From assembly GCA_020891255.1 (NCBI GenBank), contig BQFW01000009.1:186001-250000 (forward strand): 64,000 bases of DNA. Direction: 5' to 3'. The translations under genes and the position numbers were made by a program. The notes beneath the pieces were generated by a model, which saw only the letters and a list, made by a program, of their open reading frames with translations, had not been told where the DNA came from and made no database searches. This document shows, piece by piece, positions 17,993 to 28,759 of this stretch (its first letter is position 1; the number at the start of each line of letters is the position of its first letter). The stretch comes from Entomortierella parvispora E1425 (lineage: Eukaryota > Fungi > Mortierellomycota).

Positions 17993-18286
17993 GGTGAAGT
18001 GTAGGAGATTATTGTGTGGGTAAGAGTTGCATTTCTTTCGAGAGAGGGCACCCCTTTATATTTGAGAGGCTGACCTTGTCCGCCTAAACATTACCAACAA
18101 CCCTTGCTTTAGTCTGCGATAGAATGAGGGATTTTCGATTTTCCTTGTCCAATCTGAACCTGCATGAAGGGTAGGCCTGAGAAAGACCGAGACCGCAAGA
18201 CGCGCCTTCTGTCCGTCTGACCCACTTTTCTTTGGTAGTCTCCTCCCCACAATTGGTGAGGTTTGAAACACTGAATAAATTTATTT

Positions 18287-18503
18287 GAGTGAACGAATTC
18301 CCACCTCCCCCCGTCAAACATCACTGTGACGGGACGTCAAAATTTATTCTGAGCCCACTTTTGACGGCCCTCTTCCCCCGTCTGAGTTGTCAACTGCGCT
18401 ACTCTGACCCTCTCGCATCCCGTCAGAATGCTTCTCAGCACCTATTCCAACATGCCGTCAACGATTAAATTATCCCTTCATCTTACCACCGGTGAAAAAA
18501 ATC
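18287..18503 (+). repeat. Left TIR of the MULE
   Basis: Exact reverse complement of 27844-28060 when read by eye. Confidence 0.95.
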
Positions 18504-18510
18504 ATCCTTT

Positions 18511-19168
18511 TTATTCGACATTTTTTTCCAAGATAAAAATTGGTGGCAACTCTTCATCATGTTGCCGTTTTTTGGTCATTTGATAGTTTTGCTGTTCTTT
18601 CAGTTCTGATCTGAGATGTCTCAACGCCCATCGATGAACATAACAATGATACACGTCATACAGCATGAGACAGAGAGATTCGACGGAATGAGCAATAGCC
18701 AAGTGTAATACTACTTGAATATGGGCAGGGCAACATTCGAGGGCAGACTGGCCAGAGGCATTGAGGTAACGAAAAAGATCATAGGGGCGGCCATGGTCGA
18801 CTAGGCTATAGGCGAACATGGCTTGGCGTGGAGGGATATTTGTTAGGAGTTGAGGCCTTGGTCCAATTGGCTCTAGGGATGGCCCTAAGCAGAGATACAT
18901 GGGGAAATCGCTTACCGTATGTCAGCCTGCGTTCGTGACAGCACGCGTCTTGTATATCCTGATCTAGAGCCTGACCCGATATCTCACTTTATCACTTTAC
19001 CTCCAGCCTGTAATTCACAACAAGGCATATATTTCCTTCTTTTGTCCAGAGTACATCATACAATGAAAAAGATAAGTCACTAGTAATATCTTTCAGGCGT
19101 CTTATAGTCCAGGATATCTTTTTTTTTTTTTTTTGTAAGGATGACAAAGCCTCATACACAGAACTCAT
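18511..19168 (-). CDS. MULE cargo orfL: small spliced Cys/His-rich hypothetical protein; may have further 5' exons up to about 19993
   Basis: Exons about 19168-19082, 18963-18916 and 18823-18511 join in frame through GT..AG introns; no recognisable domain. Confidence 0.5.
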
Positions 19169-20242
19169 TGCTAATGTAGGAATGGTTGACGACAGGCGGC
19201 GTCTCCATGAAGGAAAAAAAAAAAAACTTAAAAAAAAGAAGAGGCGACGCGTATTGACGCGTGATGCGTGAATTACAAATCTAGGCGACATATGAATTAA
19301 GACAGATCATTGAAGCTGGTTCTACAATAAGAAGATATAATGCTTGCGGCTACTGCACGAGCTATCAATTAATACCTTCAGCAAATAGAAGTATATATAT
19401 CATCATAGGATAAAGATGGAAACAAGATGTAGATTTTTTTCTTTTTTTTTAAAAAAAAAGGCAAAACCCAAGACGAGTCCCCCAAGTACTCTGCGCGCGA
19501 GGGGCTGAAAGCCCCAACTGAGCCTCCGGAGGCCCACCAAAATCACCAGGGAGCTGACTGTTACCCTTATTCATTTTGTGGTGTCCTTTGGGAAGTTTGT
19601 GTGTTTGTGTGAGAGTGAAAGAGCGAATATCAGGTGAGAAACAAAAAAAAAAAAAAAAAAATCGACCGTCGATTTACCTTGCTGCTCTTCCTCCACCCTG
19701 TTTATCTTTCTTCGCTGCCGATCCACTCTTTCCTCGATTCCGGATCTACTGGCACCACAAACCGGGGCGTATACGACGGGTATAACCCCTTCACGGGTTA
19801 GGACTATCTTTTCTGCCAGTCTTTGGCAACGGTCAACTATATGTCGCTCTTGCAGTCTGATCGAGAATAGGAACATCAATATTGCATACGGGTGACTTTT
19901 GACCGAGTAAGACAAAAAAACAACAACTACCCTTCGTGTCTTCCCTGGCAGAGTGGCAGAGTGGCAGAATGCTGTGCCCGGGGTATATGCCACGAGTAGA
20001 CACGCTAGGTGTAGATTTTTTTTCTTTTTTTAAAAAAAAAGGCAAAACCCAAGATCGAACCCGGGTGATAACATACTATAACCCGCAATTATACCGCACT
20101 AAAAAAACCCAAATAAAACATGTGAGGAAAGTAAAAAATATAATTTAAGTACACTTTACGTATACGTATAGATCACGTTATTCACGTGACAATTACCGCA
20201 CATAGTCCTGTTTGATACGCATTTGCACCTCACCATAGCACC

Positions 20243-21609
20243 ATGTCCAACATCAACGCAAACAAGGACATCACCGAACGTCTCGAGCATTTCCGACATA
20301 TTTTCAGGGACCCAGAAGACGTCGAAAAACTTATCAGAACCACAAATTGCCCCAGCGATCACCTGTGTGAAGGTAAATGATAGTGTGTTCATTCCATTAA
20401 AATCATGACCTGTTTCATTAACCTCACCTCGATTTTACTTTGATGTACACAGCTGCACATGCAGTCAAGCATTCTGTCAATGGCAATCACTACTCAGGTC
20501 TTATCCAATCGAGCTGCCCCTCAAATCAGCGGCGAATCTTTTTGACGGTCCAGTTTCTGGTGAGACAGCTATCAGGGACTACACAGGGTGATCAGAAGGA
20601 GACTCTCCAAGGAAGTGGTGAGCTGTATGCTAGGCTTGCATCGGAGCTCGAGGTTGCGGAACCAAGCTTAAGAGGAGTGACGGCCCTAGCTTTATCGACC
20701 ACCGTGGAAAGAATCTCCCAGGATGTTCTCGAGCTTGACTCCTTGGCAGCTTTGGCACCATTCGATTCTATGTTTCAAACTTGTCATTTGAAGTACTGCA
20801 GGATACTCCGTGATATTGAGGCCACTATCCTTAGTGTCAGGCGGGATAAACGTGAGCTCACAGACCAGGAAAAGCAACAATCCCATGCTGCAGAGGTTAC
20901 AACGATCGTCCACCCTCCACTAAAGAGAAGAAGAGCAGTATGCATTGAGGACGATACGGCGGTGGGAAATGTTAGGCATGGCTTGGAGCCGGAGGAATAC
21001 GTGGCTCAACGACCTGATCAAGATAATATCGACAGCCAAGATCATCCGAAAACAGTGGTCTCCTCGGCATCATCATCGGTACGAAACCGACAGCCCACGC
21101 CAATATCAGTACTTATATCTGCGGCGCGACCACCTTCAATTCCAGCAGTCGCTTCTTCATCGACAGGAGCAAAAATGGGGACGGTGCCAGGCACTGAACG
21201 TGATATTCCCTCCAGTGTTTCATCTGAATCGGGCAATAGCTCGAAACAACAGCATCGGGGTGCCAATGGATCGAGGTCTCGAACAATAACTCTAGAGAAG
21301 AGATTGGACGATCTTCTCACTAAACAGCAAGGACAGCAAATGCTACAGGCGCTGCATGTAGTACAGCACGGGCAGCAAATGTCGCAACATAGCCAGCAAG
21401 AGATTTCACGAAAGGTCGATGCCATCCTTCTAAACTTACAACTCTTATCACAGGCGATAATGCAAAGGCTCAACGATGGCCAAGGCCCACACGAGTCTAT
21501 ATGTTGTGCCGAACATGCTACGTCCTCACGGCCACCTATATTTCCCTTACCAACAGTTACTCCGAGGACACCGCAACCTCAAGATCATTCGTTGAGCAGA
21601 CCAGAGTAG
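20243..21609 (+). CDS. MULE cargo orfM: about 430-aa hypothetical protein with an NLS-like motif
   Basis: ATG at 20243; intron about 20373-20451 (GTAAAT..ACAG) joins to the 389-codon ORF; PPLKRRR motif; Ser/Thr- and Gln-rich tail. Confidence 0.7.
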
Positions 21610-22138
21610 ACCTCTCTCTCCTTTGTCCAAGAGAAATTTCTTTATGTGTACATGTACTTGAGTTAGTGCGGAGCATTGAAGAGTCCAGAGTAAATATGTA
21701 CTGTACATAGTTTTTTTGTCACGCAGCCATATTTGGTCTTGCCGGCGACCCATGTGAGTGATTTTTTTTTTTTTTTTTTTTTGACAGAGCACCAATAAAA
21801 CTGGGCAGATTGCTCCAACGTCCTTCAAGTTGAAAGTCGGAGTTGTTCTTTCATCCTCGGAATTCTAACCGTGGACATCAAAGCTTGGGAACATGGCGAA
21901 AACACAGGGTCGTGAAAGAAAAATAAGCGCAAACTCTAATGACACACCATGCAACCATGCATGCGTGAAAATTTTTTTCGGACCTTCATAACGCGTTCCG
22001 ACACTGGGCGTGAAGGTGAAGTGGTGGCTGCTAGATGCATCCACTATGGACTTGGAAGACTTCTAAATCCCTTTTATATGTTGGGCTACATCCTCTTTCT
22101 CACCGCACCTTCTGCTCTTCCCTTCATTTTCTGCCAAT

Positions 22139-23320
22139 ATGCTGGACATTCCCCGCAATTCCACTTCATCTGCCAACCTTGTCCCTATAGACATAGAGAC
22201 CTTCCAACCCGCAGACTGCCCCATCGAATTGGGGCGCGTCTGGGTCCAAGACAAGACTTGCCAGGAGCTACTTGACTGGGCGAGGGTCAACGGTATTCCA
22301 TCAGTCAGTTTGGACGCCTTTTCCGTCGTTTCTCGGCCGCAAGGGGAGGTCTATAATCAGTACGATCTCAGCTCTCTTCGCACTATCCCCGGGAACGGTG
22401 ACCTGACCGATGCAAGAGAGGAGCTGAGAAAGCCCTCCAAAAGCCACTGTCGTCTTGTCATCGACGGCAAAACTCTGACACCTGAAGCGGTCAGATATTT
22501 GCCTCAGGTGATAGATACCGTAAAACGTATTGCCGATATCCGGAGAATGCTTACATGGCTCCAAGATACGGTTTTCCATTTCGATCCCGAGCTTGCAACA
22601 TCATTTGCGGATCTCCTACGCAGAAGCACTCTTGATACTCAGTTTGATCATTTGGGGCAACGCTTAAAGGTCAGGGATATTCTCGAATTCGCTGAGGAGT
22701 CGTGGCTGTCAGAGACTTGCGTGGATGCAATCATCTCATATTTCAAGCATGAGTATGGAGGATGTGACATCCTCTTCATTCCCGCCCGTTTTCTCTGGCA
22801 CCTTGAGCAATATGGGAGGTGCGAGATGGCCTTTGCTGACTGGGGTGGTGACATCACCTGGAAAAAGGAGGATCTTGCGCAAAGACTCTACAGAAGGGCC
22901 TACGGGATAGCCGGTATGGACGCGTGCCATTGGGGGGCTGTACGTATTGATCTCCAAGAGCCTGCCATTAAGTTTGGCGATTCCATGATGCAAGAGATTC
23001 CTACGCCGGCTATTGACGGGATCGTCCAGTGGCTCATTTGCAACATACCAGAGGAGACACAACAGTGGATGGATGCCGAAAGAAATGTCACGAGACTACC
23101 TGTTATTCGCCAAACTGACTTCGGTTCTTGTGGCATCCACGCTGCAGCCGCTATCGAGCAGGATCTGATGCGCGTCCGCAACTGTCCTGACGCAACCGCC
23201 TTTTACGACAATGATCACGGCAGCTGGGAGGGACAGATGGCTCATTACCATCGAGCGCGATACTTGAAGATCATTACGTCGCAATTGAAGGTAATAACAG
23301 TTACTTCTTCAGAGAGATGA
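22139..23320 (+). CDS. Ulp1/SENP-like C48 cysteine protease domain inside the MULE
   Basis: WLSETCVDAIISYF, HWGAVRID (His), GDSM (Asp) and QTDFGSCGIH (Gln oxyanion residue + Cys) give a complete C48 catalytic set. Confidence 0.85.
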   Translation: MLDIPRNSTSSANLVPIDIETFQPADCPIELGRVWVQDKTCQELLDWARVNGIPSVSLDAFSVVSRPQGEVYNQYDLSSLRTIPGNGDLTDAREELRKPSKSHCRLVIDGKTLTPEAVRYLPQVIDTVKRIADIRRMLTWLQDTVFHFDPELATSFADLLRRSTLDTQFDHLGQRLKVRDILEFAEESWLSETCVDAIISYFKHEYGGCDILFIPARFLWHLEQYGRCEMAFADWGGDITWKKEDLAQRLYRRAYGIAGMDACHWGAVRIDLQEPAIKFGDSMMQEIPTPAIDGIVQWLICNIPEETQQWMDAERNVTRLPVIRQTDFGSCGIHAAAAIEQDLMRVRNCPDATAFYDNDHGSWEGQMAHYHRARYLKIITSQLKVITVTSSER

Positions 23321-23740
23321 CCGTTCGACCATGCAAATTCTCCGCAAATGAAAAAAGGGACTTACATTCATATCGACTCTGCTTTTAAATACCCATTAGG
23401 ATGCACTGGATAGCACCCCGATCATGACAGCTTTGTCTCCAGCTCCTCCCGTTAGCATGCCAGCTCGTACGTAAAATAATGATGCCAACCTCATTGTATG
23501 AAGACCCGCAGTTCATTTACCGTTTCGCTCCAATTCGATTGATAGAGTCCGGCAACACCTCCAACATCATCGATTTTGGACCGTACTCCGATCTTAGTGA
23601 TTATGACGAATTGCCGGAAAGGTAATGGATTGTTGGCGATCGATCTTTTGTACCTAGATGCTTGACCTAAAATCGCTCTGAAGAAAGTAAAATAACCGAG
23701 GAAAAAATCTGTGGCCCTGGCCTCTTTCTTCGATCCATAG

Positions 23741-26736
23741 TGATCCTCTGACTAATGTCTCCGCAGACGAGTACCTCGTTGATATCACGACGCAGATGCC
23801 AAGCCAAGGCCAGACATACAGCTCTACTGCAAGCTTCGCTGGAAACGCCCTCAATACTGCCTTGGATGGGGTCCATCGCTCGGACGACATCAATGGCGGA
23901 GCCGAGCCTGCGCTTGGTGAAAGTGACAGCAGTGACAAGGTCATTGATGACTCTGAGGGAGTAGACCAGCCACTCACATTCCAGCAGTATGCATTGGAAA
24001 TGTTTGGCAGAAAGATCGAGGAGCTCGATGGAGAGCCATGGATGCCGAGTATCGATTTTAAGTTCATGGATCTGTCGGCCGCCAAGGAGAATATCAAAGA
24101 ATGGGCTATCCAGTTCGGGTTCAAAACAAGGACAAGAAGATCATCCAAGACCGCTGGTATGTATTCATATCCCATGTTGTAATCAAACTGGCCATTTCAT
24201 TTTTTTTTTCTTTTTCTAATTACTCCAAACATCAATTCTGTAGTTAAAATTGTCTGCAGCCACGAGGGGACACACAAAGCGAAGAAAGTTGATGATCCTG
24301 CCAAACACCGTGCTAGGATGGCCTCTCCACGTTGCGGTTGCGGCTTCTTCATCAACCTCACTTCACCCCGTCAGATGGGAGGTAGCTGGCGGATTAGTTC
24401 CTTCAAACTTCGTCATAACAACCATGAAATGGACGCAACAATGACGAAGTACACGGTTCTTGACAAGACTATGAAGGCTACCATCAAGAAAGGTTTCGAT
24501 CTGGACATGGGCGAAAGAATGACCATCAAGCTCCTCGAGTATGAATTCCCAGGGAATAAGTTCGACAAAAAGAAAAATCCGGAGCTATCTCAGGATGTGC
24601 GAAGCCAAGTTAGACGCGACGGTCACCTCGAGCCAAAGTGAGCGTCTCCTGACACTCCTGAACCAGCAGTCGTTTTCGGCCACTTCCGAGGAATGGTATT
24701 ATCAGGCAGACTACGACGGCTTTACTCTTAGAAGAGTCTTCTGGATGAATCCTACTCAGCGCGCGCTATACAGCCGATATTACGACGTTGTTGTATTGGA
24801 CGCCACTCTACAGACGAACAAACTTGGGATGCCACTAGTACTTATCATCGTCATTGACTGTGAATTCCGATCACGGCTTGTTGCCTGCGCTCTAACCCGC
24901 AGCGAAGCTGAGGAAGACTACAGGTGGATCCTTGAGCAATTGCGATGCGCCAGCGGAGGAGTCGATCCTGGCGTTGTGTTTGTTGATATGGATCCCTCAC
25001 TTGATGCTGCCATTTCACAAGTTTGGGAGCACACTCGCGTTATCAACTGCTTATGGCACCTGCGAAACAACGTTCGTGTGCGTCTTCAACGTGTTTTTGG
25101 TATTCGGAGGTTTGACCAGTTCAGTGTGCTCTTCGAACAAGCACTTGGAGCCCTTACACCAGGGGAATTTGAGAGAGTATGGCGCGATATACTCTCCAAT
25201 TTTGGTGGTGATGGAGATGGTATAGTTGTTCCTGGAAAGGCCCCTATTGACGACAACCCCCTTTATGGAGGAACAGCAGGAAGGTACCTCAAGCGGCTAC
25301 ACAGCAGGCGAGCACACTGGGCAGGACCTTGGATTCGAGCGCCATTTACAGCAGGAGTGCGATCCACGCAGCGTGCCGAAACCACCCACAGTGTCATCAA
25401 GCGATACGAAGTTACCAGCAGCACAACGCTTCCCGAACTCTTTGAAACTATTATGTCAAAGGTCGACAATGAAGTGTCACGGCCCAGACCAGAGGATATT
25501 CGTATTCTGACCGAGACCGAAAATGGAGGCATTGAGAGGACATTCCGTGGTGTTCTTTCGATCAACCGTGATCGCCTAAGCACGTATGCACAAGCCAGGC
25601 TTAAGATAGAGATGGCTGACTCCTTGACCCATATACATCGAGATGAGGATATCGATCGATTTCTCAGAGCACAAGTACCACATGCGGGGAGAAGTACAGT
25701 AAGTTAAGCTCCGCAAAGGAAATGAAGGCCAAAGCTGGAGTTCTACGTTCTAATTGCTCATCTATGTAGGTCACGGTTGATCAGAGGACTGCTGGTTCTG
25801 TTAGCGAGCTCATTGCGCGTGTCGATGTGGACAGCATTGAAAGCGTTTTTTCAGTCTTCGATAACAGTGCAAGAACGGAGATAAGGGACTACGTGATTCT
25901 TTTTCAAGACGGATCGTATTTTTGCACTTGCGTCCTCCTGCAGGGCGAAGGATTTGTGTGCCGGCACGTTTTCCGCCCTCATGCAAGTCGATGGTCGTTT
26001 CAAGTACAAAGTCGGTCTTATCTCTGCGAGGTGGTGTAGGCCTGATTTCGAAAGGGATGCTGCCACTGCTGTGGAGAGTGAATCTACTTCCATTTCAGCC
26101 GATTCAGTCTTGGCTCGGGCAACGGCTCGACCAAGTGCATCTGTCACGAAGCCAAATGATGAATCTATCCAAGCCTCCCAAAGATTTTATTGCCCCGAGC
26201 CAGTCGTCTCTGCCAGCAAGGCTACGAAATCAAAAAAAATCCGGTATTCGAAGGTCATGCAAGCAGCCAAGGGTCTTGTGAGCGATATTCTAATGCCTGG
26301 CGTGTCAGACACAGATTTCAAGCAAGTCATCGAGAACATCAGAGCTGCATCGTCATTTGTTCCACAAGTCACAAATGGGGCTTTACAGCATCCCCAACAA
26401 CAACAGCATGGGGATGGGCATACTGAAAAGAAAGAGGGCGATGCTCAAGACATATTCAAAGGTATCGACCCAGGGATGGTTATCGACGGTGACAAAGTTG
26501 CTACAAAAGGTAGACCGAGAAAACGCAGACTCAAGGCCAGCTACGAGTCCCCATCTCGTCGCCTTCGTTTATCGCGATCGAACAAGACAGAATTGCCGGG
26601 TGTTATCAAGAAAGGGAGAGGAAGGCCCCCTCGGAAAGATGCTGCGGTCCCACCTCGGAAAGGTGCTACAATCCCTCCCCCCGAAGGATGTTCAAGCCCC
26701 CCCGGAAAGTTGCTGCAAATCAAAAGGCTCCGGTGA
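23741..26736 (+). CDS. MULE transposase (FAR1/WRKY-GCM1 DNA-binding domain, DDE core, SWIM finger, AT-hooks) interrupted by two +1 frameshifts
   Basis: WAIQFGF...CSHEG...RCGC...HNNH; VLDATLQTNKLGMPL...FVDMD...CLWHLRNN...QRAETTHS; CTC...CRH SWIM finger; KGRPRK and GRGRPPRK; frame breaks at about 24570 and 25972. Confidence 0.9.
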
Positions 26737-27843
26737 TTCCAAGGCGATCTACACGGCTGACAAAAACTATGCCTTAGTTCACGTTTGGGTGCTCTCTATA
26801 GCCAGAGCACAGAGAGAGAGAGAGAGAAAGAGGGAGAAAGAAGGAGAAAGAAGGAGAGAAATTGCTCGTGTCCAAGGAGGGTTGAGATAATAAAACGAAT
26901 GGTCCTTCGCGCAAGATTCAATTGCATCAAAAAAAAATATCCCGAGGAGTCCAAAAATTTACATCGACCAACGGTGCGATCTGCCTCTCGCCGTTCACCA
27001 TAGTCTTATTGACAAGCAGTGTCTCATTTTCACTGGGAGTCATCCTATCATCCCCATGGCAGACGCAAAGAAAGTACCGCTCAAGAACAAGGGTAAAAAG
27101 AAAATGAAGGAAGGCACTGACGATGCTGGAGGAAAGCCTTTGCAGCTCAGGACTGCCCGTAAAACAGTCTTGGTTGACTACAAGGAGATCCCTGGCACAT
27201 CGAGATCATCGGCCTCTGCCTGGAGTTCTGCTTTGAATCTCTTCATCCAATCAATTTCGTAGTCACGTCGTGCCATCGCTGTTCTTGGAAATGGTGGAAG
27301 GGGGTGCTGGGGGAAAAGAAAGGTGGATAACATGGACGCGCGTTTGTCCAGGTGTGTGCGTATTACAAAAACAGACAATCAGAAAAAAAAAATCCCGCTG
27401 GCCTTCGCCCGAGCGTTGCAAAGTGGGGCAGACAGGCCGCACCTGCATAGTAATTGTCGCACATGGGGTGGTCAACCATGAAGGGGTGGACCAAGAATGC
27501 TCTAGTACATGTAGTTTGTTGCCATAAAACGTTTCATTCCTCTAGTGTGCCTAGACTGTTGTTGAGCAGAAAGCCCACTGAGGGTGAATTACTTTTTCAA
27601 GGTCACGACTGCTTTGAAATAATCATGGTTGAGGATACCGTTCGGTGAGTAGTTTCAGTCTGTCAGGCCCAAGAACAATCTTTAATGGTCTTTCAGAAAC
27701 GCAACTTGTCATCTCCATTTGGCCTGTTTGGCATATCGCCAAGCGTTGGTGAGAGAACAGCAATGACAGAGGGAGGTCATCAGACCTCACTATTTTTATT
27801 CTAGAGTAAGTTTACTTCGATAAAAGTATTCAAGAAAATGATG

Positions 27844-28060
27844 GATTTTTTTCACCGGTGGTAAGATGAAGGGATAATTTAATCGTTGACGGCATGTTGG
27901 AATAGGTGCTGAGAAGCATTCTGACGGGATGCGAGAGGGTCAGAGTAGCGCAGTTGACAACTCAGACGGGGGAAGAGGGCCGTCAAAAGTGGGCTCAGAA
28001 TAAATTTTGACGTCCCGTCACAGTGATGTTTGACGGGGGGAGGTGGGAATTCGTTCACTC
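27844..28060 (-). repeat. Right TIR of the MULE
   Basis: Reverse complement of 18287-18503. Confidence 0.95.
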
Positions 28061-28759
28061 AATTTATTTTAGGCTTTCTATTCTCACAAATGTTGGTGTT
28101 GAACGTTTGGTGGTGCAGATTGGACGCGTTGACCCCCTTGTCTCGGGACAGCCCTAGGCAAAAGCCTCATAACTTCATAATGCTTGTCTCATGGACCCTG
28201 TCTTATAGCTCCTGTCTAGCTGTAGTCTCGGAGTAATACCCTTGACTCTCAACCTGGCTGTTGCACTGGAGTGAAACGCTTTTTTTTTGCCGGATTTGAA
28301 AGCCGCTGCATATATATGTGACTTAAGGGGTACTCTTATTCGAAGATGTCCTCGTACATGTACGTGGACATGATCAGTCGACGCAAAAGTTGGGTTTACG
28401 TGGCTCTAGCACGCCCATGATGCTCGAGATCTTGATCAAGATCCCGGGTTCCTGATGGCATCATCCGAAAGCAGCAACTGGGGACTACTATGAGCCAAGG
28501 TACCAGGGCCCCAGGACCTCACCTTGCCACCGAAAAAGTCCTCCAATGAGACTTAAAATATCAACAAGTCGACCCCACGCCACCAACCTTACAGGGCTTT
28601 AACACGGGGGACCTATTTTAGCGGGTTTACACGGCTCTAGCACGAGGAACTAACTTTGGCGCTATAGTTCTCTGGATCCTGATCAAGGTGCCAGGTCCCA
28701 GAGTCCTTCAAATGATCATTACGCCGCCTTATTGGACCTAATTGACGGTGGCAAGGCGC

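Follow-up and report, generated by a model that had tools for sequence, protein, structure and literature searches.

Ulp1-type protease domains (Peptidase_C48, hereafter C48) have been gained repeatedly by DNA transposons, among them plant Mutator-like elements (MULEs) and CACTAs, animal Ginger and Mutator elements and fungal Cryptons, and to our knowledge none of these transposon-borne domains has a demonstrated function. In plant MULEs, the role of the C48/Ulp1 domain in transposition or in anti-silencing is unknown (PMC2528002; PMC13317346). Here we describe a MULE of the fungus Entomortierella parvispora E1425 in which an Ulp1-like protease is read, after splicing, as the N-terminal part of the transposase. 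The element lies in a stretch of 64,000 nucleotides (nt; contig BQFW01000009.1, positions 186,001-250,000), which we call the window and whose own numbering is used throughout.

The plant elements known as ULP MULEs (Arabidopsis KI-MULE/VANDAL KIU, and others in melon, rice and grapevine) combine membership of the Mutator superfamily with a C48/Ulp1 domain, as does the window element. In plants, however, the ULP sequence lies downstream of the transposase open reading frame (ORF), in either orientation, is often separate or joined to VANC, and often occurs in elements without terminal inverted repeats (TIRs); in the window element it lies upstream, is fused in frame to the transposase N-terminus, and belongs to an element with TIRs in a fungal host. 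Ginger1 transposases carry a C-terminal Ulp1 or OTU domain, and Ulp1-containing Mutator transposases are known from hydra and lancelet (Bao et al., 2010; PMC2836005). Both groups hold Ulp1 and a DDE transposase in one polypeptide, like the window protein, but they are non-fungal and are without its extra N-terminal domain. Ginger1 moreover pairs an integrase-type DDE domain with a C-terminal protease, where the window protein pairs a MULE-type DDE domain with an N-terminal one, and the animal Mutator proteins are likened to it by domain content, not by domain order. Rice and grapevine CACTA elements (Tnp2 plus ULP1) offer another case of C48 joined to a DNA-transposon protein, though in a different superfamily and in plants. 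Excerpts from Muszewska et al. (2017; PMC5751038) and PMC13465315 give C48 as an accessory domain or marker of DNA transposons and Cryptons in fungi, and in those excerpts neither an N-terminal, in-frame FAR1-MULE-SWIM fusion nor transcript evidence is described. New here are the placement of the protease at the N-terminus, upstream of the DNA-binding domain, the extra N-terminal domain, the host lineage, and transcript-type support in a family that appears to be currently active.

The join between protease and transposase

We consider it likely that 22139 to about 26777 is a single transposase gene with five introns and an N-terminally fused protease, that it belongs to a complete and recently active MULE, and that its product would be an active, transposase-tethered protease. 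A sequence-only reading of the window had proposed that the protease frame, through a phase-0 donor at 23291 and the exons 23400-23466 and 23546-23621, leads to an acceptor at 23741 that lands in the FAR1 frame; when these splice coordinates and phases were checked against the sequence, all agreed with it. Unspliced, the ORF at 22139-23320 would encode 393 amino acids (aa); its coding sequence up to 23290 ends in AAG, followed by GTAATA, and the stop codon that would end a protease-only protein (23318-23320) lies inside intron 1.

Evidence that these splice sites are used comes from X2, a short-read run from the same sample, whose contigs were compared with 22100-26800. It is one of two runs of the sample, both listed as 'DNA?', that were compared in this way, no run labelled RNA being listed for the gene; it behaves like RNA-seq, and we infer its RNA nature from its spliced contigs and patchy cover. 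Contig ends run into Illumina adaptor sequence. The X2 contigs contain the joints 23290/23400 (109 nt skipped) and 23621/23741 (119 nt skipped), both of the GT..AG type, a contig that begins at 23546 carries the last 15 nt of exon 2 ahead of exon 3, and a further contig match starts at 25770, at the acceptor ahead of the SWIM exon. Introns 1-3 are covered by no X2 contig, and therefore the Ulp1-like ORF reads in frame into the FAR1-MULE-SWIM transposase, with the stop at 23318-23320 removed. The sequence-only reading had also offered a path that skips exon 3 and enters at CCGCAG/23767; this is in frame by arithmetic, but the X2 contigs hold no such joint and we dropped it.

The GenBank model GJJ74381.1 treats 22139-26736 as a single gene, whose name refers to the SWIM domain alone. 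When E. parvispora E1425 was annotated, a TruSeq RNA library was mapped and served AUGUSTUS as hints (PMC8759367), which is why the same small exons appear in the GenBank model. Since the model was built by AUGUSTUS with RNA hints, and also contains invented introns (see below), we did not count it as independent support.

Support for the join comes in addition from related loci. A word-indexed protein search found no match for the protease ORF and, for the spliced models, only the three models of the same genome. Searching exhaustively with HMMER, we obtained 97 matches to the protease ORF, those named all being from Mortierellaceae, and several of the relatives' predicted proteins run on from the protease into FAR1-like sequence. 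Five relatives share the domain order, two of them without any intron between protease and FAR1. In Dissophora globulifera (locus L008), an uninterrupted 750-codon ORF comprises the N-terminal domain, the protease, an acidic linker of ~330 residues and the start of FAR1; we calculate the chance of a stop-free linker of ~330 codons at ~1e-7. The ORF is followed by a 73-nt phase-1 intron at a site homologous to window 24157-24243, after which the rest of FAR1, the MULE and SWIM domains and a GRP-rich tail continue in the same frame with no frameshift. In Gryganskiella cystojenkinii (L006) the protease continues within one exon up to the start of FAR1, where the contig ends. Podila clonocystis (L001, 93 nt) and Actinomortierella wolfii (L009, 87 nt) have one phase-0 intron each, within 1-2 codons of window intron 1 and just past a conserved RYL helix, and in Mortierella sp. 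GBA30 (L005, L007) protease-transposase fusions have been modelled. Lobosporangium transversale (L010) and Benniella sp. (L011) encode FAR1-MULE-SWIM on the strand of the protease ORF, which precedes it by ~1.1 kb. In the elements of nine Mortierellaceae taxa the protease keeps this place, and the order protease-FAR1-MULE-SWIM is ancestral in this Mortierellaceae MULE family. The proposal of a fusion would have failed had homologous elements never kept the two domains in frame; in Dissophora and Gryganskiella the frame is uninterrupted.

Three of these relatives call for separate remarks. Dissophora JAAAIP010000586.1 (L008 509-5209) holds an apparently intact whole gene with only two introns, which GenBank annotates for its first 750 codons only, as a hypothetical protein. 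Two Crinkler-domain genes adjoin the protease-FAR1 locus of Actinomortierella wolfii (L009 4914-8011), and Lobosporangium transversale has a second, fragmentary protease copy (L010 50-750) ~6 kb upstream of the annotated one.

Downstream of the join, the protein has the layout of a MULE transposase, with a FAR1/WRKY-type DNA-binding domain before the DDE domain and a SWIM finger after it. FAR1 reaches 30.4 bits (cut-off 28.1) on the spliced model; the MULE DDE domain (PF10551) is found at E 7e-18. The SWIM match is weak as assembled (E 0.065), and its CxC..CxH motif runs on in frame with the deletion at 25976 that X2 calls for. Two AT-hook-like GRP motifs (26509-26526 and 26614-26631) lie in the exon 6 tail. 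The proposed order Ulp1, FAR1 DNA-binding domain, DDE, SWIM and AT-hook-like tail is supported both by the transcript-type joints and by the five relatives that share it. One fusion protein had been proposed, of ~1,350 aa; the spliced joints agree with a single protein, while its predicted length comes to ~1,390 aa, with X2-supported indels applied and an X at the A-run shift discussed below.

The protease and its N-terminal domain

The protease matches Peptidase_C48 (PF02902) with 23.4 bits against a cut-off of 20.7, a partial match to profile positions 93-180 of 217. Its residues follow the His-Asp-Gln-Cys order of C48, with the oxyanion Gln325 six residues ahead of Cys331. In an alignment of 27 relatives, whose sequences are 21-41% identical to that of the window, at least 90% of members retain H264, W265, G266, D281, S282, S330 and C331; G280 is found in all of them, and Gln predominates at position 325. 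A family-profile search matched yeast Ulp1 (1EUV, E 7e-8) as well as SENP1, and in the alignment the catalytic residues coincide. An AlphaFold2 model of the protease (predicted local distance difference test, pLDDT, 88) had 1EUV_A as its top Foldseek match in the PDB (E 1e-8, TM 0.70 by target), ahead of SENPs and NEDP1. The claim that the His/Asp/Cys triad and the oxyanion Gln are intact thus holds: the residues were located, are conserved and align to Ulp1.

The residues of the Gly-Gly tunnel, HW/WL, are also present and conserved. In fold, triad, oxyanion Gln and HW/WL tunnel residues the window protease is like yeast Ulp1, human SENP1/2 and NEDP1, from which it differs in its low identity (~15%), its extra conserved domain of ~150 residues and its tether to a transposase. 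Judged from sequence conservation and the structural model, it is a bona fide C48 fold under selection and not a decaying captured fragment.

The extra domain lies ahead of the protease (aa ~22-170; 22202-22648, ~150 residues) and is conserved in the family, with an invariant Trp, Pro, Pro and Trp in 15 relatives. AlphaFold2 predicts it with a pLDDT of 92, and Foldseek found no match to its fold in the PDB (best E 0.48). Between protease and FAR1 the window protein has an acidic, disordered linker of ~140 residues, in which a motif in exon 4, INGG/A (23889-23903), is like the cleavage sites of clan-CE proteases.

The element, its copies and competing readings

The gene lies in a complete Mutator-like element of 9,774 bp (18287-28060), bounded by TIRs of ~225 bp and, at both ends, by a 9-bp target-site duplication (TSD), in keeping with the TSDs of 9-11 bp and long TIRs of MULEs (Table 1). 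The TIRs were traced by self-BLAST of the window, which gave a 237-nt inverted match (18276-18511 against 27835-28071). There are at least three copies of the element: that of the window, one on another contig (L002), and one 11 kb upstream of the window (L003). The latter two differ from the window copy only by homopolymer-length indels and one change within a poly-A run, and among the three copies there are no coding substitutions. From these near-identical copies, the window element appears to be recently active and its family young. The element contains a second gene on the same strand (20243-21609), annotated as 428 aa and without a Pfam domain, for which tBLASTn gave no match among the related loci compared.

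Table 1. Coordinates of the element and of the exons, introns and catalytic codons of its fusion gene, in window numbering.
Feature	Position	Strand	Remarks
Left target-site duplication	18278..18286	.	AATTTATTT; same 9-mer at both element ends
Left terminal inverted repeat (~225 bp)	18287..18511	+	97.9% reverse-complement match to 27835-28060
Exon 1 (384 codons)	22139..23290	+	N-terminal domain aa ~22-170, then Ulp1-like C48 protease aa ~170-384
Catalytic codons	H264 22928, D281 22979, Q325 23111, C331 23129	+	Exon 1
Intron 1 (109 nt)	23291..23399	+	GTAATA..TTAG, phase 0; joint 23290/23400, depth 4.1
Exon 2 (67 nt), linker	23400..23466	+	First 31 nt joined to exon 1, last 15 nt to exon 3
Intron 2 (79 nt)	23467..23545	+	GTACGT..ATAG, phase 1; loose end before 23546 is last 15 nt of exon 2
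Exon 3 (76 nt), acidic linker	23546..23621	+	Entire exon within contig bearing the 23621/23741 joint (side 74)
Intron 3 (119 nt)	23622..23740	+	GTAATG..ATAG, phase 2; joint 23621/23741, depth 2.4
Exon 4, remaining linker and N-terminal half of FAR1/WRKY-type DNA-binding domain	23741..24156	+	Acceptor CCATAG/23741
Intron 4 (87 nt), inside FAR1 domain	24157..24243	+	GTATGT..GTAG, phase 1; GenBank model; no read cover
Exon 5, C-terminal half of FAR1 and MULE DDE/RNase H-like domain	24244..25698	+	Domain matches
Intron 5 (71 nt)	25699..25769	+	GTAAGT..GTAG, phase 0; X2 contig match starts at 25770 after 6 unmatched letters
Exon 6, SWIM zinc finger (CxC..CxH) and basic tail	25770..26777	+	Sequence and X2 contigs
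Right terminal inverted repeat	27835..28060	-	Pairs with left repeat, ~98% alike
Right target-site duplication	28061..28069	.	AATTTATTT

Intron 4 has its counterpart in the phase-1 intron at the homologous position in Dissophora. As assembled, however, the window copy is not one open frame, a point that the sequence-only reading overlooked when it proposed a one-frame protein, correct though its splicing was: there are shifts at 24566-24578 and 25976 and indels at 26677 and 26696. X2 is without one C at 25976, which restores CRHVFRLMQ (compare CRHYFRLMQ in Dissophora), and it differs from the assembly also at 26677 (-1) and 26696 (+CC), moving the stop codon from 26734-26736, as assembled, to 26775-26777. 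The GenBank models of the element family bridge such homopolymer errors with invented introns and lose the SWIM finger in doing so. In GJJ74381.1 the invented introns are 24537-24639 and 25585-25944, the second of which swallows the real intron 25699-25769 and deletes the finger. An extra G at 22342 in both L002 and L003 breaks the protease ORF there, owing to which the models of these two copies join the upstream gene to the protease.

The remaining shift, of 1 nt, falls in an A5GA5 run (24566-24578, exon 5) and is common to all three assembled copies. Pilon polishing is poor in multi-copy repeats. Because the E. parvispora assembly was made from Nanopore reads and polished with Pilon (PMC8759367), we rate an assembly error as the likelier source of this shift, and a Nanopore or assembly homopolymer error is in our judgement probable. 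The other reading, that the shift is real, would give a protease-FAR1 protein of ~700 aa without DDE domain, with transposase either absent or produced only through infrequent +1 slippage on AAA-AAT; the presence of the shift in 3 of 3 copies speaks for it, and Lys-tRNA could, to judge from the sequence, re-pair at +1 on the A-run. We hold it to be improbable, in that all differences between the copies are homopolymer indels, the typical Nanopore error, the comparable shift at 25976 is absent from the short-read contigs, and the existence of young, identical copies points to a working transposase. Moreover, across the A-run the two window frames combined are colinear, residue for residue, with the intact Dissophora gene.

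Several observations weigh against a single fused and active protein. The junctions come from separate short contigs with a depth of 2.4-4.1, and no read or contig spans the distance from protease to DDE; X2 carries the label 'DNA?', its RNA identity being our reading of it, and what is known of the fusion comes from DNA and transcript-type contigs. The A-run shift is present in all three copies, X2 cover is absent across 24543-24708, and a real shift would end the product at 24639-24641, without the DDE domain. Stops in every frame interrupt the linkers of Lobosporangium and Benniella, where the annotation covers the protease by itself. Finally, we infer both the substrate of the protease (SUMO, NEDD8, ubiquitin or the protein itself) and its role. 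The low read depth and the two lone annotations, together with an in-frame ATG at 23796, would suit a gene that makes two proteins, a protease from transcripts retaining intron 1 (stop at 23318-23320) and a transposase begun at that ATG, with the fusion as a minor isoform. This is quite unlikely given that no X2 contig covers introns 1-3, that Dissophora and Gryganskiella have no stop at all between the domains, and that the gap in Podila, of only 93 nt, leaves no room for a promoter. That the protease is a passively captured fragment of a host gene, in the manner of Pack-MULEs, and plays no part in the life of the element, is the least probable of the readings considered here: MULEs often take up host sequence (PMC13317346), but the catalytic residues and the extra N-terminal domain are conserved at 21-41% identity, and the position of the protease is fixed across the nine taxa.

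A further alternative accepts that the fusion is translated and has the protease free itself within the linker, for example after INGG (23889-23900), to leave two separate proteins. In this the protease would resemble clan-CE viral proteases that cut precursors at GG/X, and its conserved Gly-Gly tunnel residues would fit; a DGG/A in the Podila linker lies upstream of FAR1, as does INGG/A in the window. The linkers of four other relatives (Dissophora, Gryganskiella, Mortierella sp. GBA30 and Actinomortierella) are, however, without GG, chance alone can readily place a GG among ~140 linker residues, and no fold like that of a ubiquitin-like modifier lies ahead of the site. Self-cleavage at a conserved GG was therefore rejected, the motif not being conserved among relatives; cleavage at a Gly-Gly site more generally we weakly disfavour, and such a polyprotein seems to us a doubtful account of the gene. 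Our preferred reading remains the single gene whose product keeps the protease tethered to the transposase.

Possible role of a tethered protease

If the fusion protein acts as its domains suggest, the protease may be active on a ubiquitin-like modifier that ends in Gly-Gly. The FAR1, SWIM and AT-hook-like parts would bring the tethered protease to the element, where it might free the transposase, repair factors or chromatin of SUMO or a related modifier, and the removal of the modifier could aid transposition or counter silencing. A more specific version, which we put forward tentatively and regard as rather unlikely as it stands, is that the protease strips SUMO (or NEDD8) at the element's chromatin or transpososome, licensing excision or blocking SUMO-dependent silencing, with the N-terminal domain selecting the substrate.

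The Entomortierella family combines very young, near-identical copies, transcript-type evidence for the fusion, intact catalytic residues, and a Dissophora relative that needs almost no splicing, and a comparison of transposition between protease-dead and wild-type versions is therefore feasible. Were the specific version true, the Ulp1 domains of transposons, for which an explanation has been lacking since 2006, would gain a function that can be demonstrated in a culturable fungus whose element appears to be currently active.

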